A DNA stretch of 64,000 bases, taken from Scyliorhinus canicula. Lineage: Eukaryota. The DNA lies in NCBI RefSeq assembly GCF_902713615.1, contig NC_052171.1:19379952-19443951 (forward strand). The letters run 5' to 3'. Of the stretch, positions 4,784 through 62,782 are shown piece after piece (the first letter of the stretch is position 1; every line of letters starts with the position of its first letter). Below the pieces are notes generated by a model, which had not been told where the DNA came from, searched no databases, and saw nothing but the letters and a program-made list of their open reading frames with translations. Position numbers and translations under genes: made by a program.

Positions 4784-4787
4784 GTGG

Positions 4788-5420
4788 AGACACGGAACCA
4801 AATATTGTGTGTTCCAGCCGTGTCTCCCAAGTCTCTGCTCTTCCTGCTGAATGTGCCTCATCACCAAGATGCAAAGTGACTGGTTTTTTTTTATTGGTTC
4901 ACGGGATGTGGGTATCGCTGGCTGCGCCAGAATTTATTGCCCATCGGTGAGGGCATTTAATTGTCAACCACATTAGTCCATTCCTTTTCTAAAAAAATAT
5001 TTTTTTTTTTTATCAATTTAGACTAACCAATAATTTTTTCCAATTAAGGGGCAATTTAGCATGGCCAATTGCCTAACCTGCACTTCTTTGGGTTGTGGGG
5101 GCGAAACCCACGCAGACACGGGGAGAATGTGCAAACTCCACACGGACAGTGACCCAGAGCCGGGATTCGAACCCAGGTCCTCAACGCCATGAGGCAGCAG
5201 TGGTAACCACTGTGCCACCGTGCTGCCCTACGAATACAAATCTTAATGCAGCCCAATGATGCACCTTTGCTGACACGGAGAGAGTGATTTCTGTTCGGTT
5301 CTGTCGGGTGGTGTGGGTTTTTATACTTCACTTTGAAGGTTACAAAGTTTAAGTTGTCTTGGTCCGCAGTGATGTCCACGTCAGCACCAGCCATTGGCCG
5401 GTCATCAAGGTCACTGATCT
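4788..5420 (-). pseudogene. msmb: MSMB-like promoter/exon 1 remnant with start codon and donor deleted
   Basis: Paralogous to 29307-29760. TATAAAAA at 5318-5325 and the CCAAT box are retained; the ATG|GTATGT segment is missing; a SINE sits at 5030-5228. Confidence 0.8.
5030..5228 (-). mobile_element. tRNA-derived V-SINE, short subfamily
   Basis: Same family as 3823-4035. Confidence 0.8.
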
Positions 5421-5639
5421 GATATCTTCATGCTGATACTGAGGCCAATAACCTTGGGGAGGTCAGCCAATGAGTAAAGACCATAATGCAACAGGCACCT
5501 CCTCAACTCTTGGTGAAAATAGTGTCTTGGGATCTTTTACATAAACAAATGAATGTGGCCAGGACCTTTGCTCAACATGTGGTCTGACAGTGCCGCACTC
5601 CTCAGGATTGGCTGTCACACCCAGAGGAGGAACTTCCAA

Positions 5640-16561: not shown

Positions 16562-16682
16562 TCATTTCCGAGCACTGGTACAGTCTTCTGCATGATTATC
16601 TGACTTGTAGACCTTGTAGCTACAAGTCGTCTTGTCTAGCAATGGGATACACCCTGCTGGAACATCAGTTGGAGCCAAACTC
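16562..16682 (-). CDS. msmb: MSMB-like gene A exon 4
   Basis: TTTCCAG| acceptor; SLAPTDVPAGCIPLLDKTTCSYKVYKSDNHAEDCTSARK*. Confidence 0.88.
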
Positions 16683-19600
16683 CTGGAAATCACAGAGACA
16701 TAATACATCAGAAATATCCCATCAGCAGGGTTCACTTTCTGCTGGACTGTTAACACTGGACAATGTCATCACCCGCCCCGAGGAATTGATGAACACATAT
16801 TGAAAAATTCCATGTTACCCTCGATGCCCCATAAGAATATTCCCTCCCTCCATCCATACCCTCCCTCCATCTCCACCCTCCTTCCGTCCACCCTCTCTCC
16901 GTCTCCACCCTCCCTCCATCTCCACCCTCCCTCCATCCCCACACTCCCTCCATCTCCACCCTCCCTCCATCTCCACCCTCCCTCCATCTCCACCCTCCCT
17001 CCATCTCCACCCCCTCTCCGTCTCCACCCTCTCTCCATCTCCACCCTCCCTCCGTCTCCACCCTCTCTCCGTCTCCACCCTCTCTCCGTCTCCACCCTCC
17101 CTCCATCTCCACCCTCCCTCCGTCTCCACCCTCTCTCCGTCTCCACCCTACTTCCATCCACACCCTCCCTCCGTCTCCACCCTCTCTCCGTCTCCACCCT
17201 CTCTCCGTCTCCACCCTCCCTCCGTCTCCACCCTCCCTCCATCTCCACCCTCTCTCCATCTCCACCCTCCCTCCGTCTCCACCCTCTCTCCGTCTCCACC
17301 CTCTCTCCGTCTCCACCCTCCCTCCATCTCCACCCTCCCTCCGTCTCCACCCTCTCTCCGTCTCCACCCTACTTCCATCCACACCCTCCCTCCATCTCCA
17401 CCCTCCCTCCATCTCCACCCCCTCTCTCCGTCTCCACCCTCCCTCCGTCTCCACCCTCCCTCCGTCTCCACCCTCTCTCCATCTCCACCCTCCTTCCATC
17501 CACACCCTCCCTCCATCCACACCCTCCCTCCAACCACACCCTCCCTCCATCCACACCCTCCCTCCAACCACACCCTCCCTCCATCCCCACACTCTCTCCA
17601 TCTCCACCCTCCCTCCGTCTCTATCCTCCCTCCGTCTCTATCCTCCCTCCGTCCCCACCTTCCCTCCGTCTCCACCCTCCCTCCGTCCCCACCTTCTCTC
17701 CGTCTCCACCTTCTCTCCGTCTCCACCCTCCCTCCGTCTCCACCCTCCCTCCGTCTCCACCCTCCCTCCGTCTCCACCCTCTCTCCGTCTCCACCCTCTC
17801 TCCGTCTCCACCCTCTCTCCGTCTCCACCCTCTCTCCGTCTCCACCCTCTCTCCGCCTCCACCCTCTCTCCGTCTCCACCCTCCCTCCGTCTCTATCCTC
17901 CCTCCGTCTCCACCCTCCCTTCGTCCCCACCTTCTCCGCTCCACCCTCCCTCCGTCTCCACCCTCCCTCCGTCTCCACCCTCTCTCCGTCTCCACCCTCC
18001 CTCCGTCTCCACCCTCTCTCCGTCTCCACCCTCCTCCGTCTCCACCCTCTCTCCGTCTCCACCCTCTCTCCGTCTCCACCCTCTCTCCGTCTCCACCCTC
18101 TCTCCGTCTCCACCCTCTCTCCGCCTCCACCCTCTCTCCGTCTCCACCCTCCCTCCGTCTCTATCCTCCCTCCGTCTCCACCCTCCCTTCGTCCCCACCT
18201 TCTCTCCGTCTCCACCCTCCCTCCGTCTCCACCCTCCCTCCGTCTCCACCCTCTCTCCGTCTCCACCCTCCCTCCGTCTCCACCCTCTCTCCGTCTCCAC
18301 CCTCTCTCCGTCTCCACCCTCTCTCCGTCTCCACCCTCTCTCCGTCTCCACCCTCTCTCCGCCTCCACCCTCTCTCCGTCTCCACCCTCCCTCCGTCTCT
18401 ATCCTCCCTCCGTCTCCACCCTCCCTTCGTCCCCACCTTCTCTCCGTCTCCACCCTCCCTCCGTCTCCACCCTCCCTCCGTCTCCACCCTCTCTCCGTCT
18501 CCACCCTCTCTCCGTCTCCACCCTCTCTCCGTCTCCACCCTCCCTCCGTCTCTATTCTCCCTCCGTCTCTATCCTCCCTCCGTCTCCACCCTCCCTTTGT
18601 CTCCACCTTCTCTCCGTCTCCACCCTCCCTCCGTCTCCACCCTCCCTCCGTCTCCACCCTCCCTCCGTCTCCACCCTCCCTCCGTCTCCACCCTCCCTCC
18701 GTCTCCACCCTCCCTCCGTCTCCACCCTCCCTCCGTCCCCACCTTCTCTCCGTCTACACCTTCTCTCCGTCTCCACCCTCTCTCCGTCTCCACCCTCTCT
18801 CCGTCTCCACCCTCCCTCCGTCTCTATTCTCCCTCCGTCTCTATCCTCCCTCCGTCTCCACCCTCCCTTCGTCTCCACCTTCTCTCCGTCTCCACCCTCC
18901 CTCCGTCTCCACCCTCCCTCCGTCTCCACCCTCCCTCCGTCTCCACCCTCCCTCCGTCTCCACCCTCCGTCTCCCACCCTCCCTCCGTCTCCACCCTCCC
19001 TCCGATCTCCACCCCCCTCTCCGTCTCCACCCTCCCTCCGTCCCCACCTTCTCTCCGTCCCCACCTTCTCTCCGTCTACACCTTCTCTCCGTCTCCACCC
19101 TCCCTCCGTCTCCACTCTCCCTCCGTCCCCACCTTCTCTCCGTCTCCACCCTCCCTCCGTCTCCACCCTCCCTCCGTCCCCACCCTCCCTCCGTCTCCAC
19201 CCTCCCTCCGTCTCCACCCTCCCTCCGTCTCCACCCTTCCTCCGTCTCCACCCTCCCTCCGTCTCCACCCTCCCTCCGTCCCCACCCTCCCTCCGTCCCC
19301 ACCCTCCCTCCGTCCCCACCCTCCCTCCGTCTCCACCCTCCCTCCGTCTCCACCCTCCCTCCGTCTCCACCCTCTCTCCGTCTCCACCCTCTCTCCGTCT
19401 CCACCCTCTCTCCGTCTCCACCCTCCCTCCATCTCCACCCTCCCTCCGTCTCCACCCTCCCTCCGTCTCCACCCTCCTCTCCGTCTCCACCCTCTCTCCG
19501 TCTCCACCCTCTCTCCGTCTCCACCCTCCCTCCGTCTCCACCCTCCCTCCGTCTCCACCCTCTCTCCGTCTCCACCCTCTCTCCGTCTCCACCCTCTCTC

Positions 19601-22600
19601 CGTCTCCACCCTCTCTCCGTCTCCACCCTCTCTCCGTCTCCACCCTCTCTCCGTCTCGACCCTCTCTCCGTCTCCACCCTCTCTCCGTCTCCACCCTCCC
19701 TCCCTCCGTCTCCACCCTCCCTCCGTCTCCACCCTCCCTCCATCTCCACCCTCTCTCCTGCTAATGCAAATAGAACATAGAACATAGAACAGTACAGCAC
19801 AGAACAGGCCCTTCGGCCCTCAATGTTGTGCCGAGCTATGATCACCCTACTCAAACCCACGTATCCACCCTATACCCGTAACCCAACAACCCCCCCTTAA
19901 CCTTACTTTTATTAGGACACTATGGGCAATTTAGCATGGCCAATCCACCTAACCCGCACATCTTTGGACTGTGGGAGGAAACCGGAGCACCCGGAGGAAA
20001 CCCACGCACACAGGGGGAGGACGTGCAGACTCCACACAGACAGTGACCCAGCCGGGAATCGAACCTGGGACCCTGGAGCTGTGAAGCATTTATGCTAACC
20101 ACCATGCTACCGTGCTGCCCCAAATCTGGGGTAGACTGTGACATCTCCGAGTCTCCATTCTGCTGAGCAGAAGACCGTCCTTCCCGGGATTATTTTCTAC
20201 CCGGAACATGTGGAATATTCCTTGTCGCGACAGCAACATGACATCACCAGAATGGCGCAGTGTCATGTGTCCCAGTCTTTGTTTTGTCTGTGACTGTTGG
20301 CAGAACACAGCACAGCTCTGATATCGACAACCTATCTCCTTTTGTAGAAATTTCCCCATGTGTATGGTCTCTACATCCGGCCCACAAGGTGGTTCCACAA
20401 TCACCAACAAGGCAGGACTGACCTCCAGGTCTGGCTGTGAAATCCAACCCACTTTCAGCTTTAATAAGAAACATTCATGCAGAGATTTCCGAGGTACAGA
20501 ACTTACATTGAGCAACACTTCACCCATTCACCCGTGCAGCGACAATTCTGACAGTCTGAGTTTCTCCAGGAATCCCCGACGTCACACAATGATCCATCTT
20601 GACATTGACATTTCTTTGATGCTGGAATTCCAATTGGATTTGGAGAGGAGAGTGATGAGAGAAAAGGGGAAAGAGATTGACATTAGTCTGTCACTGTCAC
20701 ATCAAAGTCTGAAGAAGTATAATGGGGCAACTTTGACCTTTGTGCTTTGGAAGGATTGCCTGGGCAGCTGGATCAGTTTAATGTCCATCCCTGGGCTCCC
20801 TGGATCTGGGAAGAGCCAAGTTCCTTTTCCAGGAGGATCCATCCCTCAGTACTTGACTGAAGCTGGAATCTCCTTTGTATTCAACGGACAAGCCTTCGGC
20901 CCCTGGAGCAGGAGCTTGCTGGTTCGGCAATGCGGAATATTGGCCCATTTCTTCCCAGAGCCTCGCGGGAGGGGAGGACGTGAAAGTCAATCCCTGAGGG
21001 AAGGCTCCATGTGGCTTGGGGGGGATCGTTTGAGAGGCCGGGCCTCCACCATGATATCATTGGGGTCTGCAGCCATTGACCACTCAGCTGGTGAGGTTGG
21101 GCGGTCAATTCCCAGACTTTGCTCATGTCCCCACCCAGAGGGAGTCTAGGGTTTGGAAAGGTTGAGTAGGTACCTCGATTAGAGTCTGTCTGACGTTCCT
21201 TTTGACAGGCTGATTCTCCATGTCCCACAGCCAGGAGCAGAAGGGTAACGCACACCAAGACTTTCTGTTGGGTTAGGTTGGAGGTGGAGGGAATGAAGAG
21301 AGAACACATTGAGGAATTAACTCATTCACTCAGTTTACAGTCATTCCCAATCGTTATCATTCAGAGCGTTGCTCAAGAAACCACCCAGAGAATTCCAGAG
21401 GCAATTGGGAACATTTCTTGTGGCGAGGATTGTGGGATAAGGTTTGCATGACCAGTCAAAGAGCGAGTGGAACAAGGAATCTATTTCTCAATCCTTTTTT
21501 AAAAATATTTTTATGAGGGCTTTGTCATTTCATTGTGAATTTTAAATAACGAGTCAGGACCAACACACGTATTTACAAACTTGTACATCAACTGTGGTTC
21601 AGGCAGTCATTTGGAAGCAAATTGTCCTGTGGCATTATAGAAATGTTCAGTCTACAGGACGCTTCCAGATGGAGAAGGTGGTGGCAGATCAGGGTGGTAG
21701 ATATGTGATTGTGACGGGGTGCTGGAGGGGAGATTAGTGGCGCTGTTAAGTGTATATGGTCCCAATTGGGACGATGTGGGATTTGCGAAGAAGGTGTTTG
21801 GGGCCATTTCCGACTTGGACACACACGAGCTGATTGTGTGGGGGGGGGGACTGGAACTTGGTGTAGGAGCCAAGGTTGGACAGATCACGGCCGGGCTCGC
21901 TGGTCCCATCTGGGGGGGGGGGGGCTAATGGTGGCAAAGGGAGGTTCCTGCATCCAAGGGAACGGGAGTACTCGTTTTTCTCAGCAGTCCATAAGGTATA
22001 CTCGCGAATCGACATTTTTATGGTGGGAAAGGCTTTGCTGGCTGGGGCAAAGGGGTCGGAATACTCTGCAATTGCAGGGTCAGATCATGCTCCGCATTGG
22101 GTGGATATGGTACTGGAGAAGGGGGTCGCGCAGAGGCTGGGGTGGAAATTAGATGTGAGACTTTTGGGGGACCAAGGGTTCTGTGACAAAATTGAAAAGG
22201 TAATTGAGGAAGATGTAGGTTTCAGCTTTACGGGTGAGGTGTCGAAGGCAGTTGTCTGGGAGGCTCTAAAGGCGGTGGTGAGGGGGGAGGTGATTTTGTT
22301 TAAGGCCAGGGTGGACAAAGAGGAGAGGTTGGAGCGGCAGAGGGTAATAGAACAAAGAACAAAGAACATTACAGCACAGGAACAGGCCCTTCGGCCCTCC
22401 CAGCCTGCGCCGATCCAGATCCTTTATCTAAACCTGTCTCCTATTTTCCAAGGTCTACTTCCCTCTGTTCCCCGCCCATTCATATACCTGTCTAGATGCC
22501 TCTTAAATGATGCTATTGTGCCCGCCTCTACCACCTCCGCTGGTAAAGCGTTCCTGGCACCCACCACCCTCTGCGTAAAAAACTTTCCACGCACATCTCC

Positions 22601-41495: not shown

Positions 41496-42444
41496 TGTTG
41501 CACGTTTTACTATGGGCGTAAAACGCGTTTATTGGAGTGTATTAACACGCCTCCGAGTTCGACGTGTGCTTAACACTGCTAGGCTCTGTTCTATGTAATT
41601 ATTTAGCTCTGGAGTCGCCAGTTGCCGTATAGGCAACGTCACAAGTATTCCAAGGTCAAGTTCAAAGTAATAAAGACGATACACCGATTAGTAAAGTTCA
41701 AACGATCAATATTTATTATACAGTTAATAATAAATACTCATGCACACACTAAGAGACTAAGCTACAACTAAACATAAGCAAACAGAATACTTATCTAACA
41801 GGAACAGGCAAGGTCAGAGAACGAGGCCTTCGTCCTGGTTTTGTCTGCAGCCTTCAGCAAGCGTTCTGGTACTTGGGAGTCTAGTGGGCTTGGATCGCGT
41901 AGCGAGCGTTGAACTTACGGTTTCGGCGGCTGGTGCTCAACGGCTGGAGTCAGGATGCCAGGTGTCAGTCGGAGCCGGAGCACGGGTTTAACAGACCGGA
42001 CAACACGAGGTCCCTATCTTTTATAGGGGTTCCGTTGTCCTTCCCTCTTCTCGGGCGGGCTCTACCTATTGGATCAATTTCTTATCGATACTGGATTAAT
42101 TCCCCAATGCGAGGGGGTCTCCGTGATGGAGGGGGCGTTTCTTATGTCCTTTTGTTTGGAGGTTTCTGGTGCCTCGATGTCTGGGTCTTGATTGGAATGT
42201 GTCCATTCAGAACCAAATGTATCTATTGTGTGGGTGTTCAAGTCTGATGGCCTCATTAGCATGCAAAGCGTTTTGCCATTTGCACCTAGCTAAGGTCTTT
42301 TCACCTGAGCCCAAACTGGTTTCTGCTGCTGCAGAATGCAAACTGCTCTTTGCAGACTGCTGTTCTGGCTAAACTGTCTGTTTCCCAGCAGCCTTCCATT
42401 TTAGTTTGGCTCAGTGTCCATTTTGCGTGGCCAGCATGGCTACA
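41496..42444 (-). repeat. 5' LTR
   Basis: TATAAAA 42019-42025, splice donor GTAAGT at 41918, AATAAA 41712-41717. Confidence 0.95.
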
Positions 42445-44103: not shown

Positions 44104-44233
44104 TTATTTCCCAACACTGTGATGCACCCCACATTCGATGGAAGAATCATTCCTCAGATGGACTCTGTAGCGACAGCTCTGACGGTCAAAGAATGCGATA
44201 CAGTCATCTGAGTAACCAGATGGTATGCCGTAC
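44104..44233 (-). CDS. msmb: MSMB-like gene B exon 4
   Basis: GGCAG| acceptor; YGIPSGYSDDC...GK*. Confidence 0.93.
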
Positions 44234-47200
44234 CTGCCGACACAGAGGAATAAGGCATCAGAAATACCCCGGAGGTAATGACCACAGTTCCCCTGTACAG
44301 TTTCACTGGACAATTTCACCAGCGACTCCGATCAAGTGAACAACCAGAATTGAGAAAATTCCTTCTTTACCCACAATGCACCAGCTGCACCCTGAGAAGC
44401 CAATTACAGATGGGCAAAAGCAGAGAAGGGATTTATCATGGGGCACCTCCACCTTTACTCCATGTTCACTCTTTCTCCATCTCCACCCTCTCTCCATCTC
44501 CACCTTCTCTCCATCTCCACCTTCTCTCCATCTCCACCATCTCTCCATCTCCACCCTCCCTCCATCTCCACCCTCCCTCCATCTCCACCCTCCCTCCCTC
44601 CATCTCCACCCTCCCTCCGTCTCCACCCCCCCTCCATCTCCACCCTCTCCACCCTCCCTCCATCTCCACCCTCCATCTCCACCCTCCCTCCATCTCCCTC
44701 CCTCTATCCCCACCCTCTCTCCATCTCAACTGTCTCTCCATCTCCACCCTCCCTCCATCTCCACTCTCCCTCCATCTCCACCCTCCCTCCATCTCCACCC
44801 TCCCTCCATCTCCACCCTCCCTCCCTCCATCTCCACCCTCCCTCCATCTCCCTCCCTCCATCTCCCTCCCTCCATCCCCACCTTCTCTCCATCCCCACCT
44901 TCTCTCCATCCCCACCTTCTCTCCATCTCCACCCTCTCTCCATCTCCACCCTCCCTCCATCTCCACCCTCCCTCCATCCCCACCCTCCCTCCACCTCCAC
45001 CCTCCCCGTCTCCACCATCCATCTCCACCCTCCCTCCATCCCCACCCTCCCTCCATCCCCACCCTCCCTCCATCTCCACCCTCCCTCCATCTCCACCCTC
45101 CCTCCATCTCCACTCCCTCCATCTCCCTCCCTCTATCCCCACCCTCTTTCCATCTCAACTCTCTCTCCATCTCCACCCTCCCTCCATCCCCACTATCCCT
45201 CCATCACCCTCTCTCCATCTCCACCTTCTCTCCATCTCCACCCTCCCTCTGTCTCCACCCTCTCTCCCTCCATCTCCACCCTCCCTCCATTTCCACCCTC
45301 CCTCCACCTCCCTCCCTCCATCCCCACCTTTTCTCCATCCCCACCTTCTCTCCATCCCCACCTTCTCTCCATCTCCACCCTCCCTCCATCTCCACCCTCC
45401 CTCCATCTCCACCCTCTCTCCATCTCCACCTTCTCTCCATCTCCACCCACTCCCTCCGTCTCCACCCTCTCGCCACCCTCTCTCCCTCCATCTCCACCCT
45501 CCCTCCCTCTCTTCATCCCTTCATCTGTTCATTCTCTACACTTCCTTCATCTATTCACTCTCTTCATCTACCCTCCCTTTCCATCTACACTCCCTCTTCA
45601 TCGGCACGCTCTCTCGTGATCTCCGCCATCACTTCCTCCACATCCTCTGTAGTTCCGCGCCCTCTTTTTTAAAATATAAATTTAGAGTACCCACTTAATT
45701 TTTTCCAATTAAGGGGCAATTTAGCGTGGCCAATCCACCTAGCCTGCACATCTTTTGGGTTGTGGGGGTGAGACCCACGCAAACACGGGGAGAATGTGTA
45801 AACTCCACACGGACAGTGACCCAGAGCCAGGCTCGAACCTGGGTCCTCGGCGCAGTGAGGCTGCAGGGCTAACCCACTGAGCCACCGTGCTACCCGACAC
45901 TCTAAGATTCATCAGTCCCAAACACGTATGTCATGGTAACTGACCATGGACATTTATTGGAAATCTTTCCAATTCTTTGGAAATGGGAATAAAGTGTTTT
46001 AATAAGAAAGGGGATGTAGTCTTCTGTCTTCGCGAGCTAACAGAATGACATCACCAGAGGGAGTGTGCCTAACGTGACCCAGTCTTGGTTTGCCTTTTGC
46101 CTGTGAGCAGAGCTCTGACCCCTTCATTCATAATAAATGCTCTCATGTTCCGGGTCTCGATGTGTGGACCCTCAACGTGGGAACGCAATCCCTTCTGTGG
46201 GATTTCTTTCTGCGATGAGATCAGCACGACAGGACTGACCTCCAGGTCTGGCTGTTATATCAAACCCACTTTGTGCTTTCATAAGAAGGATCAAGACAGG
46301 GTAGCATGGTGGTTAGCATAAATGCTTCACAGCTCCAGGGTCCCAGGTTCAGTTCCCGGCTGGGTCACTGTCTGTGCGGAGTCTGCACGTCCTCCCCGTG
46401 TGTGCGTGGGTTTCCTCCGGGTGCTCCGGTTTCCTCCCACAGTCCAAAGATGTGCGGGTTAGGTGGATTGGCCGTGCTAAATTGCCCGTAGTGTCCTAAA
46501 AAGTAAGGTTAAGGGGGGGGATTGTTGGGTTACGGGTATAGGGTGGATACGTGGGTTTGAGTAGGGTGATCATTGCTCGGCACAACATCGAGGGCCGAAG
46601 GGCCTGTTCTGTGCTGTACTGTTCTATTCTATTCTATCACACAATGGACTGACTCCAGGTGGAGTGGCAGAGAATCACTTACATTGTGCAGCATGACATT
46701 GATTCAGCGGAGCACTCACACCTCATGCAGTCAGTGTTTCTCCAGGTTTCACCAAGCTCATGCCAGGTGCCATCAACGTCATCTTTACATTTTCTTGTTA
46801 CTGGAGCGAGAGTGAGTGAGCGAGAGAGAAAGAGGGAGAGAGAGAGGTTAGTCTGTCACTGTCACATCAAAGTCTGAAGAAGTATAATGAGGTAACTTTA
46901 ACCTTTGTGCTTTGGAAGGATTGCCTGGGCAACTGGCTCAGTTTAATGTCCATCACCGGTCTCTCTGGACCTGGGACGAGCCAGGTTCCTTTTCCAAGAG
47001 GATCTGTCCCTGAGAGTTTGACAGGGTGAATCTCGGAACGCTAAGGCTGCCAGGTCACTCATTCCTGGCTGGCCCTTCTGGATGGGCATGGGTTAAAGGT
47101 CAGGAGCCCAATGTGCTGGAAGGGTGTTTCCGTGGTTACCACAATGAGCCCTCGGCCTGTCTGCAGGCCGCGCCCTCGCTTGTATTCGACAGCCAAGCTG

Positions 47201-50200
47201 AGGCGATGGAGCAGGAGCTCGCGAGTTGGGCAAGGCGGAATATTGGCCCACTCCTTCCTGAATCCTCGGGGAAGAGGAGAGCGTGAAAGTCAATCCCATG
47301 TGGCTTGAAGCATTTATGTCGATGCTTACCTCGCAACCCCACACCCCCATCCCCACACCCCCATCCCAGATAGAGGTTGAGATTGGAAAGGTTTCAGGTC
47401 TTACTTTCATTTGGGACTTGCTGAGGAGAAACGTAGCAGGATGATTCTGCATCGTCCACAGCCAGGAGCAGGAGAGCAACGCACACCAAGGACTTCTGTC
47501 GAATTGGTGTCAGGTGGGAGGTGAGCGAATAAGTGGAGAACATGTTGAGGAATTCAGTTTGGTCAATCATGTCATGGTCAGATGCGAAAGATTTAAAAAA
47601 AAATATGTTAATCAGCTGAACCACTCCTCAGAGTATCAATGCACTTATCCAGCAATAACCTGCTCACGGACACTCAGTTTGGGTTCCGTCAGGGTCACTC
47701 AGCTCCTGACCTCATTGCAGCCTTGGTTCAAACATGGACAAAAGAGCTGAATGCCAGGGGCGAGGTGAGTGACTGCCCTTTGACATCAAGGCAGCATTTG
47801 ACCGAGTGTGGCATCAAGGAGCCCGAGCTAAACTGGAGTCAATGGGAATCCGGGGGGAAAACTCTCCACTGGTTGGAGTAATTCCTGGCACAAAGGAAGA
47901 TGGGTGTGGTGGATGGAGGTCGATCATCTCAGCTCCAGGACATCACTGCAGGAGTTCCTCAGGGTCGTGTCCTAGGCCCAACCATCTTCAGCTGCTTCAT
48001 CAATGACCTGCCTTCCTTCATAAGGTCAGAAGTGGGGGTGTTTGCAGACAATAATGGAGCAGTCCATGTCCAAATGCAGCAAGACCTGGACAATATCCAG
48101 GCTTGGGCTGACAAGTGGCAAGTTACATTCGCACCACACAAGTGCCAGGCAATGACCATCTCCTACATGAGAGGATCTAACCATCACCCCTTGACATTCA
48201 ACAGCATTACCATCACTGAATCCACCACAATCAACATCCTGGGGATTACCATTGATCAGAAACTGAACTGGACTAGCCATATTCATACTGTGGCTACCAG
48301 GGCAGGTCAAAGCTTCGGACTGCTACAGAGAATAACTGCCCTCCTGACCACCCCCCCCCCCCCCTCTCCAAAGCCTGTCCACCATCTACACGGCACAAGT
48401 CAGGAGTGTGATGGAATACTCTCCACTTGCCTGGATGAGTGCAGCTCCAACAACACTCAAGAAACTCAGCACCATCCAGGACAAAGCAGCCCCGCTTGAT
48501 TGCTCCCCTTCCACAAACATTCAAACCCTCCACCACCGACGCACAGTGGCAGCCGTGTGTACCATCTACAAGATGCACTGCAGCAACTCACTGAGGTTCC
48601 TGAGGCAGCACCTTCCAAACCCACGGCCACTACCATCTAGAAGGACAAGAGCAGCAGATACCTGGGAACCCCACCACCTGGAGGTTCCCCTCCAAGTCAC
48701 TCACCACCCTGACTTGGAAATAAATCGGCCGCTCCTTCACTGTCGCTGGGGCAACATCCTGGAACTCCCTCCCTAACAGCACAGTGGGTGTACCTACGCC
48801 ACAAGGACTGTGGCGGTTTAAGAAGGCAGCTCACCACCACCTTCTGAAGAGCAACTAGGGATGGGCAATAAATGCCGATCCAGCCAGCGACACCCACATC
48901 CCGTGAATGAATTTTTAAAAAGGAAACAATAGAAAATGGCTGAGCTATCAACCTGGCTTCAGCTGGTCACCTGATACCTTGAAGCATTGTTCAAGGTAAC
49001 AAGGGCCACGAGGGATGGGAAATGTGGCATAACTAACTCTAGACAAAGGAAAACCTTCACAGCTCACCGTCTCCCATCATAGTGCCAATGGCCAAAGTAT
49101 TAGCAATCGGAACACAGTGGTCTCGACAAAGAGAGAGTCAGTTAAATTAACCCAACAACGTGCCTTCTCCTTCCGTGCCAGCCTCACTCTGGAAAGATGG
49201 GGGCCGGGGGGGGGGGGGGGGGGGGGGGGGGGGACAGTCTGCCACCAGCCAACCACCCGGTGGAAGGAACATTCCGGTTGACTCAGGATTCTGGACTCTG
49301 GACACATGGAAAACCCATAATGGTTATCTTGGCCGATCCCTGAACACTCTTCTATTCTCCTTATCTCTCATTCACTGTGTGGGTGTACAAGGGTGGATGT
49401 TGCACAGCAGCTCACGCATGCGCACACGTGTGTCTACATATGTGTGTGTGTGTGTTGTGGGGGGGGGGGTCTGTGTCATTGAGGATTGGAACATTTTGAA
49501 TTTTCCCGTACCAGCCCCCCCGAACAGGCACCGGAATGTGGTGACTAGGGGCTTTTCACAGTCACTTTTTGTGACAATAAGCGATTTTCATTTCATTTAA
49601 GGATTGGGGAAATTGGCCACCATTTACAGAGAGAGGAATCCAAATAAGAGAGAACACCTTCCAGTTTTTGGGAGAATGGGAACATCAGGACAGTTTAAGC
49701 TTACACCTCCTGCTGCCCATGTCACTCAGTTTACAGTCATTCCCAATCCGATACAAGCTGTCACTCTGAATGTTACTCAATAAACCACCCAGAGACAATT
49801 GGATAGACTTGGAACCCATTTCTCAATCCTGATGTTACAAACTCATCACCATGACCAAAACCAATTGTCGACGCTGACATCTCAGCTCAAAGACTCCACA
49901 GGATTGGACGCAGGACGTGACGTGTCTATTGAGACATCAGCATTCCTGGGAGCGAGTCCCAATACTCCAGAATTGCAATGGAGAGTCCAGGAATGGGTCT
50001 CATGGATAAACCATGAAATAATGTTGTTGCAGATGCCAGTAGTAGTCAGCTGCGCTTTTCCCTGTGGCCATTAGGAATTAGATTGAGCTTTAAGTTTAAT
50101 TTACACGTCTCCTTTGTAGGTTTGAAAGGTGAAGGCTGGGGTGGTTTCATTGTGAAGAGGAGGCAGCAGCTGTTTGTGTCTCACACAATATAACACCCAG

Positions 50201-51188
50201 AAATAGATCAAAGCAAATTGGGAACTCGAACCCCAGGAAAGCATCTTCCACATGCGAGACATTTCAGCTCGAGACTTGCTCCTTGACAGAATGTAAATCT
50301 CAGTTCACAATCTAGTTTCTCATTCCCATTGTTCTCAAAGGTTGGATCTCACTGTCCAAGGAGTTGGATGTTAATTGTGGGGAGATGTCTTTCCCAGGGA
50401 AAGCCGCAGTTTCTATCCTGCTCCTGGTCAGGTTCATGGCAAAGATCCCTTTGTTCGACCTGACCTGTCTCTCTGAACTCCCAAGATCAGAAAGAGAGAG
50501 ACCTTGCTGCACCAATCTGAGATCTCCGTTTTTAATAACATCATCCTCGGCATGTGGATAGCGCAGTCTGGATCCGAATGCATTCTCAATCCCGAGCGGT
50601 CCGTGAGAGGGTGGTGGTGAGCTGCCTTCCAGAGCCGCTTCAGTCCATGTGGCGTAGGTACATCCACTGTGCTGATCGGGAGGGAGTTCCAGGATTCTGG
50701 CCCAGCGACAGTGAAGGAACGGCGACGTATTCCCAAGTCAGGATGGTGTGTGAATTCCCTGCATTTATTGTCCTTCTCCCTGGTTAATTAATGCTCACCG
50801 TTAACTGCTACAGGACATGGGACATTGCTGTCTCCTGTTCTCCCATCTCTGGGAGCACGAGCAGGTGTTTCCCACTCCGTAGTCCCTCAATTACAGGGCG
50901 TTTACTCGGGAGCAGGTCTGGGAGCATTTCAGAGACACGGAACCAAATATTGTGTGTTCCAGCTGTGACTCCCAACTCTCTGTTCCTCCTGTGGAATGTG
51001 TCTCATCGCCAAGCTGCAAAGTGACTCGTTTACCCAAACAATCCATTGTTACCAATGTTAGAGATCATCCTGTAACAAATCCAAATCTTAATGCAGGTTA
51101 CCTCACCAAGAAAACGTTCCCAGATCAATAATCCCTCATCAGTATAATCTTACTCAGACACACACACACACACACACATACATACCAT
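44104..51188 (-). CDS. msmb: Beta-microseminoprotein-like gene B, join(51186-51188,47405-47495,46683-46800,44104-44233), 113 aa
   Basis: MKSLVCVALLLLAVDDAESSCYVSPQQVPNEITRKCKDDVDGTWHELGETWRNTDCMRCECSAESMSCCTMYGIPSGYSDDCIAFFDRQSCRYRVHLRNDSSIECGVHHSVGK. Signal peptide, 10 Cys in PSP94 spacing, canonical splice sites. Confidence 0.95.
44471..45520. repeat. 17-bp minisatellite (CCCTCCCTCCATCTCCA)n in intron 3 of gene B
   Basis: Visible tandem array. Confidence 0.95.
45665..45895 (-). mobile_element. tRNA-derived V-SINE, short subfamily
   Basis: Family match; duplicated at 60953-61183. Confidence 0.8.
46297..46636 (+). mobile_element. HE1/V-SINE-type SINE
   Basis: Family match; duplicated at 61585-61923. 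Confidence 0.9.
46683..46800 (-). CDS. msmb: MSMB-like gene B exon 3
   Basis: Long pyrimidine tract and CCAG| acceptor, |GTAAGT donor; TRKCKDDVDG...SCCT. Confidence 0.95.
47405..47495 (-). CDS. msmb: MSMB-like gene B exon 2
   Basis: GACAG| acceptor, |GTAAGA donor; signal peptide plus SCY. Confidence 0.93.
47628..48925 (+). mobile_element. CR1/L2-group LINE, 5'-truncated and frameshifted
   Basis: QFGFRQGHS and AGVPQG.VLGP.IF..FINDL RT motifs plus the 3' UTR. Confidence 0.85.
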
Positions 51189-51340
51189 ACTCAGCTCAAC
51201 GATACACCTTTGCTGTCGCCGAGAGAGCGATTTCTGTTCGGTTCTGTTGGGTGTTGTGGGTTTTTATACTTCACTTTAAAGGTTACAAAGGTCAAGTTGT
51301 CTTGGCCCGCAGTGATGTCCACGTCAGCACCAACCATTGG
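51186..51340 (-). promoter_or_regulatory. Gene B proximal promoter and exon 1a
   Basis: CCAAT 51336-51340, TGACGTGG 51319-51326, TATAAAAA 51261-51268, ATG|GTATGT 51186-51188. Confidence 0.85.
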
Positions 51341-51497
51341 CCGGTCGTCAAGTTCGCTGATCCGAGAGAATCTTAACGCTGGAGGAACTTCCAATCTGAG
51401 CTGAGTGTGAGCTGGGGTGAGGGTGGGGGGGAATGTCATTGACCATCACTGGTGTAGTGAGGTCAGAGGTCCAGCCACTGACTTCTGCTGACGTCAC

Positions 51498-51682
51498 TGG
51501 GGCTGGTTTAGCTCACAAGGCTAAACCGCTGGCTTTTAAAGCAGACCAAGCAGGCCAGCAGCACGGTTCGATTCCCGTACCAGCCTCCCCGGACAGGCGC
51601 CGGAATGTGGCGACTAGGGGCTTTTCACAGTAACTTCATTGAAGTGTATTCGTGACAAAAAGCGATTTTCATTTTTTCATTT
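51498..51682 (+). mobile_element. Short tRNA-derived SINE
   Basis: A box TAGCTCACAAGG, B box GGTTCGATTCCC; absent from the duplicate at ~53215. Confidence 0.8.
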
Positions 51683-52549
51683 GTTGACAATCACAGTTGA
51701 CAATTGCAGGCTGGTGCAGTGCTGTGTACCAGTGTGAGTGAGCCCGAGTCAGGAGAGCTGAAAATGGAGCACAACTCAGAAACAAGGGTCTTTCTCCTCA
51801 GTTCCCTGATTGCTCAAGGTGTGAGGACTGAGTAACTCTGAATTTCACTGGTAACAATGGCCGTCCATTATGTATTCCGTCTTCAGGTGGAATTTTCCAT
51901 TCTGAAAACCATGTGTGATGGCGGACAGGAAAAATGGAGTGAGTCCTGGGTGAGGAGGGTGTACCTGCCCCTGAACAGGAGACCCCTATCAGGCTGGGGG
52001 CACTCAATGCACCATGGTGAAGTCAGTGGTAATCTAATGTGTAAATTAAGCTGAGAGAGTGGTGATAAGTGACTTCGTGGTGGTCGGAGTAATAGAGACA
52101 TTTTTCAGGGGTACAATTTAATCTGGTAATTATGCAGCTGGCTCACAGGTGGGAGTGTTGTGGAGTGTAGTTGAAAAGCCTGTGGAGAGTCAGAGGTGTT
52201 GGAAGAAGCATATCCTGGGCTGTTTCCAGATTGTAACAAAATCACAAAGTCACAAATTGAGATCGGAGGAGGAGAAATTGACTAAAGACAAGAGGGCTGT
52301 GGTTCAGTTATCAGAAACCAGATGGTTGATGAAACAGAAGAGCAGCTGGAGGATCAAGCTGATATCTTTAGTTCAGGAAAATTGGCAGAATTACAACAGA
52401 AGGATTTGGAGATAAAGCGGTTTTGTCAGAAAGCATAAACAGAAGTAGAATCTGATATTACACCAGAGTATTATTACATTCGATATAATGTATCAATGAG
52501 AAGGAGAAACCGTTGCATATTCAGGCAGGTGACAAATGGACAGAAGTTG

Positions 52550-52800
52550 ATCCAGCAGGGGGCAGCAGAGCGGAGCTTCTGATTGGCTGTTCCGGGGAGA
52601 TTTGCATACGTGCAGTGCGGTCAGCGTAAGTTGAAGGTGCACCTGCATCAGTGACCCGAGGAGTTCGACGGAAGTCAAGCATCCAGCAGGGGGCAGCAGA
52701 GCAGAGCTTCTGATTGGCTGTTCCGGGGAGATTTGCATACGTGCAGTGCGGTCAGCGTAAGTTGAAGGTGGTTTGTGAAGGGGCTGTTCTCGAGTGACAG
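52550..52800. repeat. Two ~89-bp direct repeats carrying CTCF-like, CCAAT and octamer motifs
   Basis: 52550-52638 and 52681-52769, at the junction of the promoter duplication. Confidence 0.85.
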
Positions 52801-52801
52801 G

Positions 52802-52873
52802 TCTTAATGCAGGTCACCTCACCAAGAAAACGTTCCCAGATCAATAATCCCTCATCAGAATAATTTTACTCAG

Positions 52874-52905
<32 letters not shown>

Positions 52906-54101
52906 CATACTCAGCTCAACGATACACCTTTGCTGTCGCCGAGAGAGCGATTTCTGTTCGGTTCTGTTGGGTGTTGTGGGTTTTTATACTTCACTTTAAA
53001 GGTTACAAAGGTCAAGTTGTCTTGGTCCGCAGTGATGTCCACGTCAGCACCAACCATTGGCCGGTCGTCAAATTCGCTGATCCGAGAGAATCTTAACGCT
53101 GGAGGAACTTCCAATCTGAGCTGAATGTAAGCTGGGGTGAGGGTGGGGGGGAAAGTCATTGACCATCACTGGTGTAGTGAGGTCAGAGGTCCAGCCACTG
53201 ACTGCTGCTGACGTCAATGTCACTGGCTGTTAGTTCTATCCACTGACAAACATCACAGTTGACAATTGCAGTCTGGTGCAGTGCTGTGTACCAGTGTGAG
53301 TGAGCCCGAGTCAGGAGAGCTGAAAATGGAGCACAACTCAGAAACAAGGGTCTTTCTCCTCAGTTCCCTGATTGCTCAAGGTGTGAGGACTGAGTAACTC
53401 TGAACTTCACTGGTAACAATGGCCGTCCATTATGTATTCCGTCTTCAGGTGGAATTTTCCATTCTGGAGACCATGTGTGATGGCGGACAGGAAAAATGGA
53501 GTGATTCCTGGGTGAGGAGGGTGTATCTGCCCCTGAACAGGAGACCCCTATCAGGCTGGGGGCACTCAATGCACCATGGTGAAGTCAGTGGTAATCTAAT
53601 GTGTAAATTAAGGTGAGAGAGTGGTGATAAGTGGCTTCGTGGTGGTCGGAGTAATAGAGACATTTTTCAGGGGTACAATTTAATCTGGTAATTATGCTGC
53701 TGGCTCACAGGTGGGAGTGGTGTGGAGTGTAGTTGAAAAGCCTGTGGAGAGTCAGAGAACTGAGGTGTTGGAAGAAGCATATCCTGGGCTGTTTCCAGAT
53801 TGTAACAAAATCACAAAGTCACAGATTGAGATCGGAGGAGGAGAAATTGACTAAAGACAAGGGGGCTGTGGTTCAGTTATCAGAAACCAGATGGTTGATA
53901 AAACAGAAGAGCAGCTGGAGGATCAAGCTGATATCTTTAGTTCAGGAAAATTGGTAGAATTACAACAGAAGGATTTAGAGATAAAGCGGTTTTGTCAGAA
54001 AGCATAAACAGAAGCAGAATCTGATATTACATTCGATATAATGTATCAATGAGTAGGAGAGACCGTTGCATATTCAGGCAGGTGACAAACGGGCAGAAGT
54101 T
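52802..54101. repeat. Tandem duplicate of 51086-52548 (promoter, exon 1, Gypsy relic)
   Basis: Near-identical by direct comparison. Confidence 0.9.
52906..53060 (-). promoter_or_regulatory. Gene B distal duplicated promoter and exon 1b
   Basis: TATAAAAA 52981-52988, ATG|GTATGT 52906-52908; CCAAT and TGACGTGG intact. Confidence 0.8.
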
Positions 54102-54884
54102 CATCAAGTTGTATTCCCGGTGGGTTATAGGAAGGAGATTTTGCAGGTAGTGCATGAGGGTTCAGTACCGGGTCATTGAGCAGTAAGGAAAACTCGAGCC
54201 AAAATACAAAAACATTTTTATTGACTGTGGCTGCAAGAGGATGTCATGGACTTTGGCTGCACCTGTCACACATGCCAGATGGTAGGAAAATCTCAAACTG
54301 ATTGATTGCGTAGGACCCCTTCCTCCGCCAAAATGTGGGAATCAGTATTTGTTTTTTTGAGAAACATTTTGTTCTATTATCAAATATAAACAGTAATGTA
54401 CAGATAGTCAAAAATCTACACACAATTTAACTTCCATGAATAACTCAATATAAACCTGCCGCCCCTCTACATCATTTGGATATTGCGTCAGCAAAGGAGG
54501 CCCAATGTCCAGCAAGCTGAGGACAGGACCAAAATGCATGCGGGTGGTTTGCCGGTGTAAGTAAACAACGGTCACACTGGTCCTCCACGTCTTGAAATGA
54601 TCCACTCATGCTTTCCTTCTCCCAGTGCGTCCTGTGCGTCACACTTGGAACTGAACCAAACTCAGTCTGGCACAGGGGACTTCTCTCCAAGGGCTTCTCT
54701 CCAAGCCTCCGCGTGATGTTCTTGTCGGATGGCCTGATTTCTATTACAAGAACATTTGGAGCTAATGCTGTAAACGATTTACTGTGGATCAATATATCCA
54801 AAACAACAGATGGTTAACAGTATGAACAAGCACAATCAACCTCTCTCTCTCCAGCTCCCAAGCCAGTCTGAGGTCACCTGACTC

Positions 54885-59391: not shown

Positions 59392-59521
59392 TTATTTCCC
59401 AACACTGTGATGCACCCCACATTCGATGGAAGAATCATTCCTCAGATGGACTCTGTAGCGACAGCTCTGACGGTCAAAGAATGCGATACAGTCATCTGAG
59501 TAACCAGATGGTATGCCGTAC
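59392..59521 (-). CDS. msmb: MSMB-like gene C exon 4
   Basis: Same translation as gene B exon 4. Confidence 0.92.
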
Positions 59522-62500
59522 CTGCCGACACAGAGGAATAAGGCATCAGAAATACCCCGGAGGTAATGACCACAGTTCCCCTGTACAGTTTCACTGGACA
59601 ATTTCACCAGCGACTCCGATCAAGTGAACAACCAGAATTGAGAAAATTCCTTCTTTACCCACAATGCACCAGCTGCACCCTGAGAAGCCAATTACAGATG
59701 GGCAAAAGCAGAGAAGGGATTTATCATGGGGCACCTCCACCTTTACTCCATGTTCACTCTTTCTCCATCTCCACCCTCTCTCCATCTCCACCTTCTCTCC
59801 ATCTCCACCTTCTCTCCATCTCCACCATCTCTCCATCTCCACCCTCTCTCCATCTCCACCCTCCCTCCATCTCCACCCTCCCTCCCTCCATCGCCACCCT
59901 CCCTCCGTCTCCACCCCCCCTCCATCTCCACCCTCTCCACCCTCCCTCCATCTCCACCCTCCATCTCCACCCTCCCTCCATCTCCCTCCCTCTATCCCCA
60001 CCCTCTCTCCATCTCAACTGTCTCTCCATCTCCACCCTCCCTCCATCTCCACTCTCCCTCCATCTCCACCCTCCCTCCATCTCCACCCTCCCTCCATCTC
60101 CACCCTCCCTCCCTCCATCTCCACCCTCCCTCCATCTCCCTCCCTCCATCTCCCTCCCTCCATCCCCACCTTCTCTCCATCCCCACCTTCTCTCCATCCC
60201 CACCTTCTCTCCATCTCCACCCTCTCTCCATCTCCACCCTCCCTCCATCTCCACACTCCCTCCATCCCCACCCTCCCTCCACCTCCACCCTCCCCGTCTC
60301 CACCATCCATCTCCACCCTCCCTCCATCCCCACCCTCCCTCCATCCCCACCCTCCCTCCATCTCCACCCTCCCTCCATCTCCACCCTCCCTCCATCTCCA
60401 CTCCCTCCATCTCCCTCCCTCTATCCCCACCCTCTTTCCATCTCAACTCTCTCTCCATCTCCACCCTCCCTCCATCCCCACTATCCCTCCATCACCCTCT
60501 CTCCATCTCCACCTTCTCTCCATCTCCACCCTCCCTCTGTCTCCACCCTCTCTCCCTCCATCTCCACCCTCCCTCCATTTCCACCCTCCCTCCACCTCCC
60601 TCCCTCCATCCCCACCTTTTCTCCATCCCCACCTTCTCTCCATCCCCACCTTCTCTCCATCTCCACCCTCCCTCCATCTCCACCCTCCCTCCATCTCCAC
60701 CCTCTCTCCATCTCCACCTTCTCTCCATCTCCACCCACTCCCTCCGTCTCCACCCTCTTGCCACCCTCTCTCCCTCCATCTCCACCCTCCCACCCTCTCT
60801 TCATCCCTTCATCTGTTCATTCTCTACACTTTCTTCATCTATTCACTCTCATCATCTACCCTCCCTTTCCATCTACACTCCCTCTTCATCGGCACTCACT
60901 CTCGTGATCTCCACCATCTCTTCCTCCACATCCTCTGTAGTTCCACGCCCTCTTTTTTAAAATATAAATTTAGAGTACCCACTTAATTTTTTCCAATTAA
61001 GGGGCAATTTAGCGTGGCCAATCCACCTAGCCTGCACATCTTTTGGGTTGTGGGGGTGAAACCCACGCAAACACGGGGAGAATGTGTAAACTCCACACGG
61101 ACAGTGACCCAGAGCCAGGCTCGAACCCGGGTCCTCGGCGCAGTGAGGCTGCAGGGCTAACCCACTGAGCCACCGTGCTGCCCGACACTCTAAGATTCAT
61201 CAGTCCCAAACACGTATGTCATGGTAACTGACCATGGACATTTATTGGAAATCCTTCCAATTCTTTGGAAATGGGAATAAAGTGTTTTAATAAGAAAGGG
61301 GATGTAGTCTTCTGTCTTCGCGAGCTAACAGAATGACATCACCAGAGGGAGTGTGCCTAACGTGACCCAGTCTTGGTTTGCCTTTTGCCTGTGAGCAGAG
61401 CTCTGACCCCTTCATTCATAATAAATGCTCTCATGTTCCGGGTCTCGATGTGTGGACCCTCAACGTGGGAACGCAATCCCTTCTGTGGGATTTCTTTCTG
61501 CGATGAGATCAGCACGACAGGACTGACCTCCAGGTTTGGCTGTTATATCAAACCCACTTTGTGCTTTCATAAGAAGGATCAAGACAGGGTAGCATGGTGG
61601 TTAGCATAAATGCTTCACAGCTCCAGGGTCCCAGGTTCAGTTCCCGGCTGGGTCACTGTCTGTGCGGAGTCTGCACGTCCTCCCCGTGTGTGCGTGGGTT
61701 TCCTCCGGGTGCTCCGGTTTCCTCCCACAGTCCAAAGATGTGTGGGTTAGGTGGATTGGCCATGCTAAATTGCCCGTAGTGTCCTAAAAAGTAAGGTTAA
61801 GGGGGGGATTGTTGGGTTACGGGTATAGGGTGGATACGTGGGTTTGAGTAGGGTGATCATTGCTCGGCACAACATCGAGGGCCGAAGGGCCTGTTCTGTG
61901 CTGTACTGTTCTATTCTATTCTATCACACAACGGACTGACTCCAGGTGGAGTAGCAGAGAATCACTTACATTGTGCAGCATGACATTGATTCAGCGGAGC
62001 ACTCACACGTCATGCAGTCAGTGTTTCTCCAGGTTTCACCAAGCTCATGCCAGGTGCCATCAACGTCATCTTTACATTTTCTTGTTACTGGAGCGAGAGT
62101 GAGTGAGCGAGAGAGAAAGAGGGAGAGAGAGAGGTTAGTCTGTCACTGTCACATCAAAGTCTGAAGAAGTATAATGAGGTAACTTTAACCTTTGTGCTTT
62201 GGAAGGATTGCCTGGGCAACTGGCTCAGTTTAATGTCCATCACCGGTCTCTCTGGACCAGGGACGAGCCAGGTTCCTTTTCCAAGAGGATCTGTCCCTGA
62301 GAGTTTGACAGGGTGAATCTCGGAACGCTAAGGCTGCCAGGTCACTCATTCCTGGCTGGCCCTTCTTGGATGGGCGTGGGTTAAAGGTCAGGAGCCCAAT
62401 GTGCTGGAGGGGTGTTTCCGTGGTTACCACAATGAGCCCTCGGCCTGTCTGCAGGCCGCGCCCTCGCTTGTATTCGACAGCCAAGCTGAGGCGATGGAGC

Positions 62501-62782
62501 AGGAGCTCGCGAGTTGGGCAAGGCGGAATATTGGCCCACTCCTTCCTGAATCCTCGGGGAAGAGGAGAGCGTGAAAGTCAATCCCATGTGGCTTGAAGCA
62601 TTTATGTCGATGCTTACCTCGCAACCCCACACCCCCATCCCCACACCCCCATCCCAGATAGAGGTTGAGATTGGAAAGGTTCAATTCTTACTTTCATTTG
62701 GGACTTGCTGAGGAGAAACGTAGCAGGATGATTCTGCATCGTCTACAGCCAGGAGCAGGAGAGCAACGCACACCAAGGACTT
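59392..62782 (-). CDS. msmb: Beta-microseminoprotein-like gene C, partial, join(62692-62782,61970-62087,59392-59521); exon 1 expected beyond the window
   Basis: Protein identical to gene B except DCMRC->DCMTC; one synonymous change in exon 2; splice sites intact. Confidence 0.93.
59759..60808. repeat. 17-bp minisatellite in intron 3 of gene C
   Basis: Near-identical to 44471-45520. Confidence 0.95.
60953..61183 (-). mobile_element. tRNA-derived V-SINE, short subfamily
   Basis: Duplicate of 45665-45895. Confidence 0.8.
61585..61923 (+). mobile_element. HE1/V-SINE-type SINE
   Basis: Duplicate of 46297-46636. Confidence 0.9.
61970..62087 (-). CDS. msmb: MSMB-like gene C exon 3
   Basis: 118 nt with AG/GT boundaries. 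Confidence 0.94.
62692..62782 (-). CDS. msmb: MSMB-like gene C exon 2
   Basis: 91 nt with AG/GT boundaries. Confidence 0.92.

Follow-up and report, generated by a model that had tools for sequence, protein, structure and literature searches.

The window analysed here is a 64-kb (64,000-nt) stretch of contig NC_052171.1 of the catshark Scyliorhinus canicula. Its minus strand carries three tandem genes for beta-microseminoprotein (MSMB, or PSP94), which we found by comparing the window with itself and by translation, and which we call A, B and C. The stretch flagged by an earlier look at the bare sequence (the original prediction) is exon 3 of gene A together with part of its intron 2, and the pattern described there was that exons encoding the mature protein diverge much faster between the paralogs than the introns beside them. 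We find that this contrast is real and that it recurs in a second cartilaginous fish, the elephant shark Callorhinchus milii, and that neither selection alone nor gene conversion alone fits the data. Genes B and C are 98.6% identical across 4.9 kb, and in all three genes the splice sites are canonical GT..AG and the reading frames are open.

The three genes belong to the beta-microseminoprotein/PSP94 family (PF05825). Exon 3 of gene B alone scores 26.1 bits against the Pfam PSP94 model, for which the cut-off is 22, while exon 3 of gene A alone reaches only 10.5 bits; the full A and B proteins (P0001 and P0050) are both listed with PF05825 in a precomputed table. Against the PDB, the B protein matched human MSMB (2IZ3) with E = 1e-14, and also chicken 6RWC, pig 2IZ4 and the snake small serum protein SSP-2 (6IMF), and the A protein matched pig 2IZ4 (E = 2.4e-7), SSP-2 (E = 7e-7) and the human protein (E = 7e-4). 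The genes have four exons, the first consisting of untranslated region (UTR) and the ATG, and exons 2, 3 and 4 contributing 91, 115-118 and 121-130 coding nt; the exons of marmoset MSMB measure 35, 106, 106 and about 230 bp (PMC2746217). The hydrophobic N-terminus of 19 residues aligns with the signal peptides of relatives and is a putative secretion signal. The mature B and C proteins have 94 residues and 10 cysteines, which align with those of human MSMB. The mature A protein has 90 residues and the canonical 10 cysteines plus two more in exon 3, or 12 in total, and its isoelectric point is 7.6 against 5.4 for B.

Gene A was placed as follows.

29653..29659, minus strand: TATA box; the RNA contig has its 5' end 25 nt downstream of it
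29577..29634, minus strand: exon 1, about 55 nt of 5' UTR and a terminal ATG (29577-29579), from RNA contigs
21174..21264, minus strand: exon 2, encoding residues 2-19 of the signal peptide and 12 residues at the start of the mature protein; its end is in phase 1
20622..21173, minus strand: intron 2 (552 nt), skipped exactly in three spliced contigs
20507..20621, minus strand: exon 3 (115 nt), core of the N-terminal domain, with the two extra A-type cysteines
16683..20506, minus strand: intron 3, containing a 17-nt minisatellite (16842-19758) and an interspersed repeat (19770-20121)
16562..16682, minus strand: coding part of exon 4, C-terminal domain and stop codon

Spliced RNA contigs fix the join between exons 2 and 3 of this gene at exactly 20621/21174. 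The loose end of the RNA contig 5' of exon 2 matches exon 1 with zero mismatches (the X5 contig covers 58 nt of it), which puts exon 1 at 8.3 kb upstream of exon 2, and the loose end past exon 3 is the start of exon 4. The donor of exon 1 is GTATGT, followed by a (TG)n run, and poly(A)-like signals of the AATAAA and ATTAAA types lie 88 and 107 nt past the stop codon. The spliced form is present in contigs from four public runs at depths of 41-894, and the protein that it encodes (109 residues) is identical to a beta-microseminoprotein-like protein of S. canicula at NCBI. A position for exon 1 at ATGACT (21339-21344, conserved in B at 49735-49740) was also considered and was ruled out by the RNA contigs; this stretch is simply a conserved piece of intron 1.

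Genes B and C were placed as listed here.

51186..51188, minus strand: start codon of gene B, at the end of exon 1 in the promoter copy that we call module B1, placed by homology with A only
47405..47495, minus strand: exon 2 of gene B
46801..47404, minus strand: intron 2 of gene B (604 nt)
46683..46800, minus strand: exon 3 of gene B (118 nt)
44104..44233, minus strand: coding part of exon 4 of gene B
62692-62782, 61970-62087 and 59392-59521, minus strand: exons 2-4 of gene C, whose exon 1 is beyond the window

The gene B protein equals XP_038641594.1 apart from the N-terminus, where the NCBI model reads from an ATG within intron 1 (47496-47541) into exon 2 and so gains a 15-residue extension. 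Judged by homology with gene A, which has RNA support, gene B more likely starts at the ATG at 51186-51188. Unlike gene A, genes B and C have no AATAAA or ATTAAA within 700 nt past their stop codons (44104-43400 and 59392-58700).

Aligned with MAFFT, exon 3 of A (115 nt) and of B (118 nt) share 73 matches, with 42 mismatches and one 3-nt indel, an identity of 63% that agrees with the 72/115 counted by hand in the original prediction. The block of intron 2 singled out there (20686-20849 against 46850-47013), with about 16 differences counted in 164 nt, is indeed 90% identical (147/163, with 16 mismatches and 2 gap columns). Exon 2 is split as had been described: in its signal-peptide part 10/57 nt differ (82% identical; proportion of differing sites, or p-distance, 0.175), and in its mature part 19/37 nt differ (49% identical; p-distance 0.51). 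Over all mature codons, A and B are 57% identical (p-distance 0.43; 116/270 differ), and the alignable non-coding blocks are 71-94% identical (p-distance 0.06-0.29). The p-distances of individual segments of the pair are as follows.

Promoter and 5' UTR: 0.062
First 680 nt of intron 1: 0.079
Intron 2, 3' block (A 20657-20857): 0.121 (24/199)
Intron 2, middle block (A 20875-20994): 0.203 (80% identical)
Intron 1, middle block: 0.215
Intron 3 start: 0.235
3' flank: 0.290
Exon 3: 0.365
Exon 4: 0.455

Exon 3 (42/115) differs from the 3' block of intron 2 (24/199) with Fisher p = 6e-7, and the mature codons differ from the pooled alignable non-coding DNA (292/1790) with p = 4e-21. Taken block by block, mature coding sequence is significantly more diverged than all of the non-coding DNA with the exception of one 54-nt block.

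The intron block chosen for the original comparison is the best-conserved piece of intron 2. About 40% of this intron in A (214/552 nt), made up of its 5' ~180 nt (20995-21173) and its last 35 nt (20622-20656), aligns with B no better than shuffled sequence. The contrast could then be an artefact in which an exon is compared with the best-aligning piece of an intron, the unalignable parts are ignored and the codon alignment inflates divergence. When the whole of intron 2 was forced into a global alignment, its p-distance rose to 0.29, and exon 3 alone (0.365) was not significantly above it (p = 0.11). However, the pooled mature exons (0.43) still exceed the forced alignment (p = 1e-4), and the codon alignment is anchored by the cysteines.

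In the 90 mature codons of A and B, the Nei-Gojobori method counts 89.3 nonsynonymous differences (Nd) in 215.7 sites and 26.7 synonymous differences (Sd) in 54.3 sites. The nonsynonymous divergence dN is then 0.60 and the synonymous divergence dS is 0.80, a ratio of 0.76, and maximum likelihood gives 0.89 (dN 0.64, dS 0.71). The ratio shows no significant departure from 1 in either direction (Fisher p = 0.36). Codon positions 1, 2 and 3 have p-distances of 0.49, 0.38 and 0.42, and 29 of the 90 mature residues are identical, ten of them cysteines. From these codon comparisons, the mature exons of A and B appear to have diverged without net purifying constraint, the ten scaffold cysteines excepted. 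The synonymous divergence (0.6-0.8) is far above the divergence K of introns and other non-coding DNA (0.07-0.37; p = 7e-5 against the pooled blocks), amounting to 2-10 times that of the alignable blocks, and dN is 1.6-9 times K across blocks and about 2.2 times the pooled K. A dN/dS well below 1 with exon dS far above intron divergence had been named beforehand as the outcome that would point to intron conversion rather than selection. The second of these is what we see, but the first is not.

The elephant shark array provides an independent replicate. Its locus L001 (21.6 kb) contains at least seven tandem MSMB genes, of which four, g4, g5, g6 and g7, were aligned end to end, giving six pairs. 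One of them, g5 (L001 13253-14265), has two stop codons in frame and lacks a single base, and is a pseudogene. The introns of these genes align end to end with 1-12% divergence. In all six pairs the divergence of the mature exons exceeds that of introns and flanks 2.6-4.4 times (p = 2e-5 to 2e-11), as in g4-g7 (7.9% against 1.8%) and g4-g6 (24.4% against 9.5%), and the signal peptide differs by only 0-10% between paralogs. Faster divergence of exons than of introns, as originally described, is not peculiar to the catshark pair. Because the introns here are fully alignable and the contrast is the same, alignment ascertainment is removed as an explanation; the artefact is largely refuted, and we consider it highly improbable.

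The codon data of the chimaera resemble those of the catshark. In five pairs dN/dS is 0.84-1.3, in g5-g7 it is 2.7, and none of these values differs significantly from 1. Non-coding K is exceeded 2.9-4.8 times by dN in all six pairs, and by dS 2.5-4.3 times in five pairs and 1.8 times in g5-g7. Synonymous divergence thus exceeds intron K in both species (two independent chimaera pairs, combined p = 0.002), and the replicate shows that the raised dS is real.

The main inference of the original prediction was diversifying selection on a binding surface. In its pure form, this holds that point substitutions on that surface are selected while the introns are an undisturbed neutral clock. The fast mature exons on a cysteine scaffold agree with such selection, as do the excess of dN over non-coding K in both species, the sharp boundary of divergence at the chimaera exon edges, the concentration of changes in the loop that runs from the C-x-C to the CC motif, and the fact that the pattern is known for the family from marmoset and habu. 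However, dS is raised as much as dN in five of the six chimaera pairs and stands at 0.6-0.8 against a K of 0.07-0.37 between A and B, and dN/dS (0.76-0.89 in the catshark) is never significantly different from 1. The non-coding blocks, moreover, span an approximately fivefold range of divergence (chi-square 113, p = 2e-21; with the 5' module described below left out, p = 2e-4), so they are not one clock. Since synonymous divergence is raised, selection on amino acids alone is insufficient, and we regard this account as unlikely.

The inequality of the non-coding blocks is greatest at the 5' end. Divergence in the A/B pair is lowest in the promoter, exon 1 and the 5' portion of intron 1 (92-94% identical), all of which belong to a module with discrete, sharp ends that is present in four copies in the window.

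28898..29772, minus strand: 5' module of gene A (875 nt: promoter and exon 1, with intron 1 as far as its nt 680); the homologous stretch of B is 50582-51381
50582-51381, minus strand: module B1, TATA box at 51262-51268
52804-53101, minus strand: module B2, 1.7 kb upstream of B1, with ATG at 52906-52908 and TATA box at 52982-52988
4787..5454, minus strand: relic D, a copy of the promoter/exon 1 module, TATA box at 5319-5325

The TATA boxes are identical in A, B1, B2 and relic D. Module B2 is 96% identical to B1 and lies within a roughly 1.7-kb tandem duplication (51086-52555 against 52802-54108), noted at 52804-53219 and 53252-54108. Relic D is about 90% identical to A despite the loss of its ATG and donor, and an interspersed repeat has been inserted in it at 5011-5231. 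No exons 2-4 were found downstream of it in the window, and judging from its sequence it would be the remnant of a lost gene copy. Module copies with discrete ends are the expected product of exchange between members of an array. Among the near-identical chimaera paralogs g4, g5 and g7, two of the three share a derived state at 14 non-coding sites, and each of the three pairings is supported (by 3, 7 and 4 sites), which at 2% divergence points to exchange among paralogs. The signs that would fit concerted evolution are the heterogeneity of the blocks, the discrete 5' module and the conflicting chimaera pairings, with one divergent pair in the window. They support gene conversion in non-coding DNA, which the original prediction had offered as an alternative or additional cause.

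Other features of the non-coding DNA were noted. Intron 3 of all three genes contains a 17-nt minisatellite with a C/T-rich unit, at 16842-19758 in A (about 172 copies), 44475-45511 in B and 59763-60799 in C (about 61 copies each), and since it is common to the three it is older than their duplication. An interspersed repeat of about 340 nt, probably a short interspersed element (SINE), has at least 10 copies in the window and was inserted independently in intron 3 of A (19770-20121, plus strand) and of B (46297-46637, minus strand; B/C). Between A and B lie two 949-nt direct repeats (32633-33581 and 41496-42444) that are 99.9% identical and about 8 kb apart, and these probably represent long terminal repeats belonging to a young retroelement. 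At 2573-2716 the 7-nt unit AACCTAG is repeated perfectly in tandem, for 20.6 copies. There were no Rfam matches in the window, and the conserved intron blocks gave no sign of a functional RNA. When the catshark non-coding blocks were compared with the chimaera locus, only microsatellites matched, and there was no deep conservation.

Orthologues bear on the age of the A/B split. With its S. torazame orthologue, mature A has an identity of 78%, and mature B is 71% and 65% identical to the two B-type proteins of that species, so that amino-acid divergence between orthologues of the two catsharks is 22-35%, a figure uncalibrated in time; no date for the split of the two Scyliorhinus species turned up in a literature search. 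Compared with proteins of the basking shark (Cetorhinus), the B type shows 60-65% identity. A maximum-likelihood tree puts the A type on a long stem (1.39 changes per site) without resolving its position, and a clade of Scyliorhinus A and B sequences only is not rejected (approximately unbiased (AU) test, p = 0.22), so both a recent and an old A/B duplication are compatible with the data. The extra cysteine pair of A is also found in the S. torazame orthologue. The annotated A-type protein of that species (P0048) is without two cysteines of the C-terminal domain and has an unrelated tail and a gene range of 111 kb. By alignment with human MSMB these two cysteines would pair with each other, and their absence reflects either a disulfide that was truly lost or an error in the gene model.

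Under an old duplication with weak constraint, the true age of the split would be read from the exons (dS about 0.7), conversion or unequal crossing-over would repeatedly have reset the non-coding DNA and the signal peptide, and nothing adaptive would be needed. This accounts for a dS far above intron K, for the mosaic of non-coding divergence and of informative sites in the chimaera, and for a 5' module that is duplicated in B1 and B2 and survives as relic D, and the position of the A type in the tree allows an old split. On the other hand, conversion tracts would have to skip all three mature exons in every pair and yet reach the splice sites, and the chimaera has no shoulder of raised divergence beside its exons. 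Weak constraint leaves the escape of the exons unexplained, and selection against converted exons would have to be added. The signal peptide (0.175) is also more conserved than the adjoining intron flank (0.30), which looks like constraint and not like conversion. We therefore find this explanation improbable.

A third possibility is a mutational process focused on the mature exons, either local hypermutation or the replacement of short exon segments, as has reportedly been proposed for conotoxins and in the ASSET model of three-finger toxins. It would raise synonymous and nonsynonymous divergence alike and change the codon positions equally, and it would stop at sharp exon edges, as is observed. 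In g4-g7 about 17 of the 22 differences are packed within 39 nt (a hypervariable patch, codons 59-71) of the loop between the C-x-C and CC motifs, and this patch includes multi-base codon changes, namely a three-base change and a two-base synonymous change in an arginine codon. The exons of A and B also show an excess of transversions (42:73 against 129:103 in non-coding DNA, p = 9e-4), although saturation could explain this. Against such a process, tblastn peptide matches revealed no donor for the patch in the 21.6-kb chimaera locus, where no dedicated search was made, and chimaera exons and non-coding DNA show no difference in transition/transversion ratio, nor in GC or CpG content. With GC and CpG content alike in exons and non-coding DNA, base composition does not account for the pattern. 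We know of no such mechanism established in vertebrates outside immune genes, and as an explanation of the contrast at this locus we think it quite improbable. A broader form of the idea is that exon-focused mutation or segment replacement drives the fast evolution of the whole family and has been one of its traits since before sharks and chimaeras split. It is suggested by a synonymous excess that equals the nonsynonymous one in both shark and chimaera and that stops at the chimaera splice sites, and it is rather unlikely.

On balance, we lean towards both processes acting together, with diversification of the exons and homogenisation of the non-coding DNA jointly explaining the contrast best. 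Loops on a rigid disulfide scaffold would diversify and be kept different, probably adaptively, while gene conversion or unequal crossing-over would homogenise the introns and the 5' module of the array, which would then look younger than the exons. Selection would maintain or drive the exon differences, and conversion would account for the low divergence of the introns. Conversion of non-coding DNA by itself is insufficient, because all mature exons escape it and the chimaera edges are sharp. For the A type, an adaptive origin of the differences is probable given its extra cysteine pair, its different charge, its retention in a second species and its high expression.

Several results weigh against this combination. 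No test gave dN/dS significantly above 1, so positive selection is not demonstrated, and the window offers a single divergent pair (A and B), too few sequences for site models. At codons that specify the same amino acid in A and B there are 5 differences in 12.3 sites, an imprecise figure that does not differ significantly from the pooled non-coding DNA (p = 0.17). Between the recent copies B and C, coding sequence shows no excess of differences (2/339, against 63/4576 in non-coding DNA), at low power. In the chimaera, intron divergence within 20 nt of the exons is as low as elsewhere, which is awkward, since conversion combined with selection predicts shoulders of divergence beside the exons. 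Finally, the excess of exon over intron divergence in the pseudogene g5 equals that of the intact genes.

Similar patterns are known from other systems. In snake venom phospholipase A2 genes and conotoxin genes, mature exons outpace introns, UTRs and signal peptides, KA/KS is near or above 1, and exon KS is above intron divergence. These are unrelated families of venom components, so the likeness to catshark MSMB is one of pattern only. For human RHD and RHCE, a model has been put forward in which selection keeps peaks of divergence between paralogs that are otherwise under gene conversion. As is generally known of that system, it too has tandem paralogs, homogenised surroundings and a divergent selected segment that includes synonymous sites. 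The chimaera array, however, lacks the shoulders of divergence that this model predicts, and in the catshark pair they are no more than irregular.

Closer parallels exist within the family itself. In callitrichine MSMB (the common marmoset together with the cotton-top tamarin), translated exons are 85-91% conserved against 91-93% for introns and flanks, most coding changes replace amino acids, and an additional exon 1 is present that carries upstream sequence and a portion of intron 1 with it (PMC2746217). The catshark genes share with these the four exons, the tandem or segmental duplicates and the lower conservation of exons than of introns. They differ in that the contrast is much larger (57% against 71-94%), that the lineage is that of sharks, that the A type has 12 cysteines, and that dS was measured here and is also raised. 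The genes SSP-1 to SSP-6 of the habu Protobothrops flavoviridis and those of other snakes form a PSP94-family tandem array with four exons and ten cysteines. Their evolution is accelerated, with KA/KS mostly 0.45-1.06 and intron KN 0.03-0.37 (PMC7150969), a finding credited to Aoki et al. 2008 (Gene 426:7), as cited within PMC7150969, which mentions phospholipase A2 as well. Of the pattern by which acceleration is strictly recognised in venom and SSP genes, the A/B pair shows exons diverging more than introns and a conserved signal peptide, but not a KA/KS above 1. One of these snake proteins, SSP-2, is a PDB match of both catshark proteins. The likeness to toxin and toxin-binding families that the original prediction pointed out stands insofar as these snake members of the same family bind venom proteins; SSPs, however, are serum proteins with venom components as their ligands, and no venom system of that sort exists in sharks. 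Exon-biased divergence had thus already been published for marmoset and tamarin MSMB and for snake SSPs, and it is extended here to cartilaginous fishes; a full-text literature search found no paper on the evolution of shark MSMB.

The A-type paralog, with its extra cysteine pair, changed charge and high expression, is a candidate for a newly acquired function. Among small secreted proteins of vertebrates, MSMB is one of those that evolve fastest. Its function is poorly understood so far, and the partners known for it, as for the SSPs, are proteins of the CRISP family. The presence of the same pattern in a shark and a chimaera, beside primates and snakes, makes it a general property of the family and not a by-product of venom resistance or of primate reproduction. 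The arrays of cartilaginous fishes are compact and multi-copy, and with chimaera introns that align end to end they provide a clean system for comparison. Such arrays could separate selection on exons, conversion of introns and mutation targeted to exons, which have been debated for toxin genes for decades.

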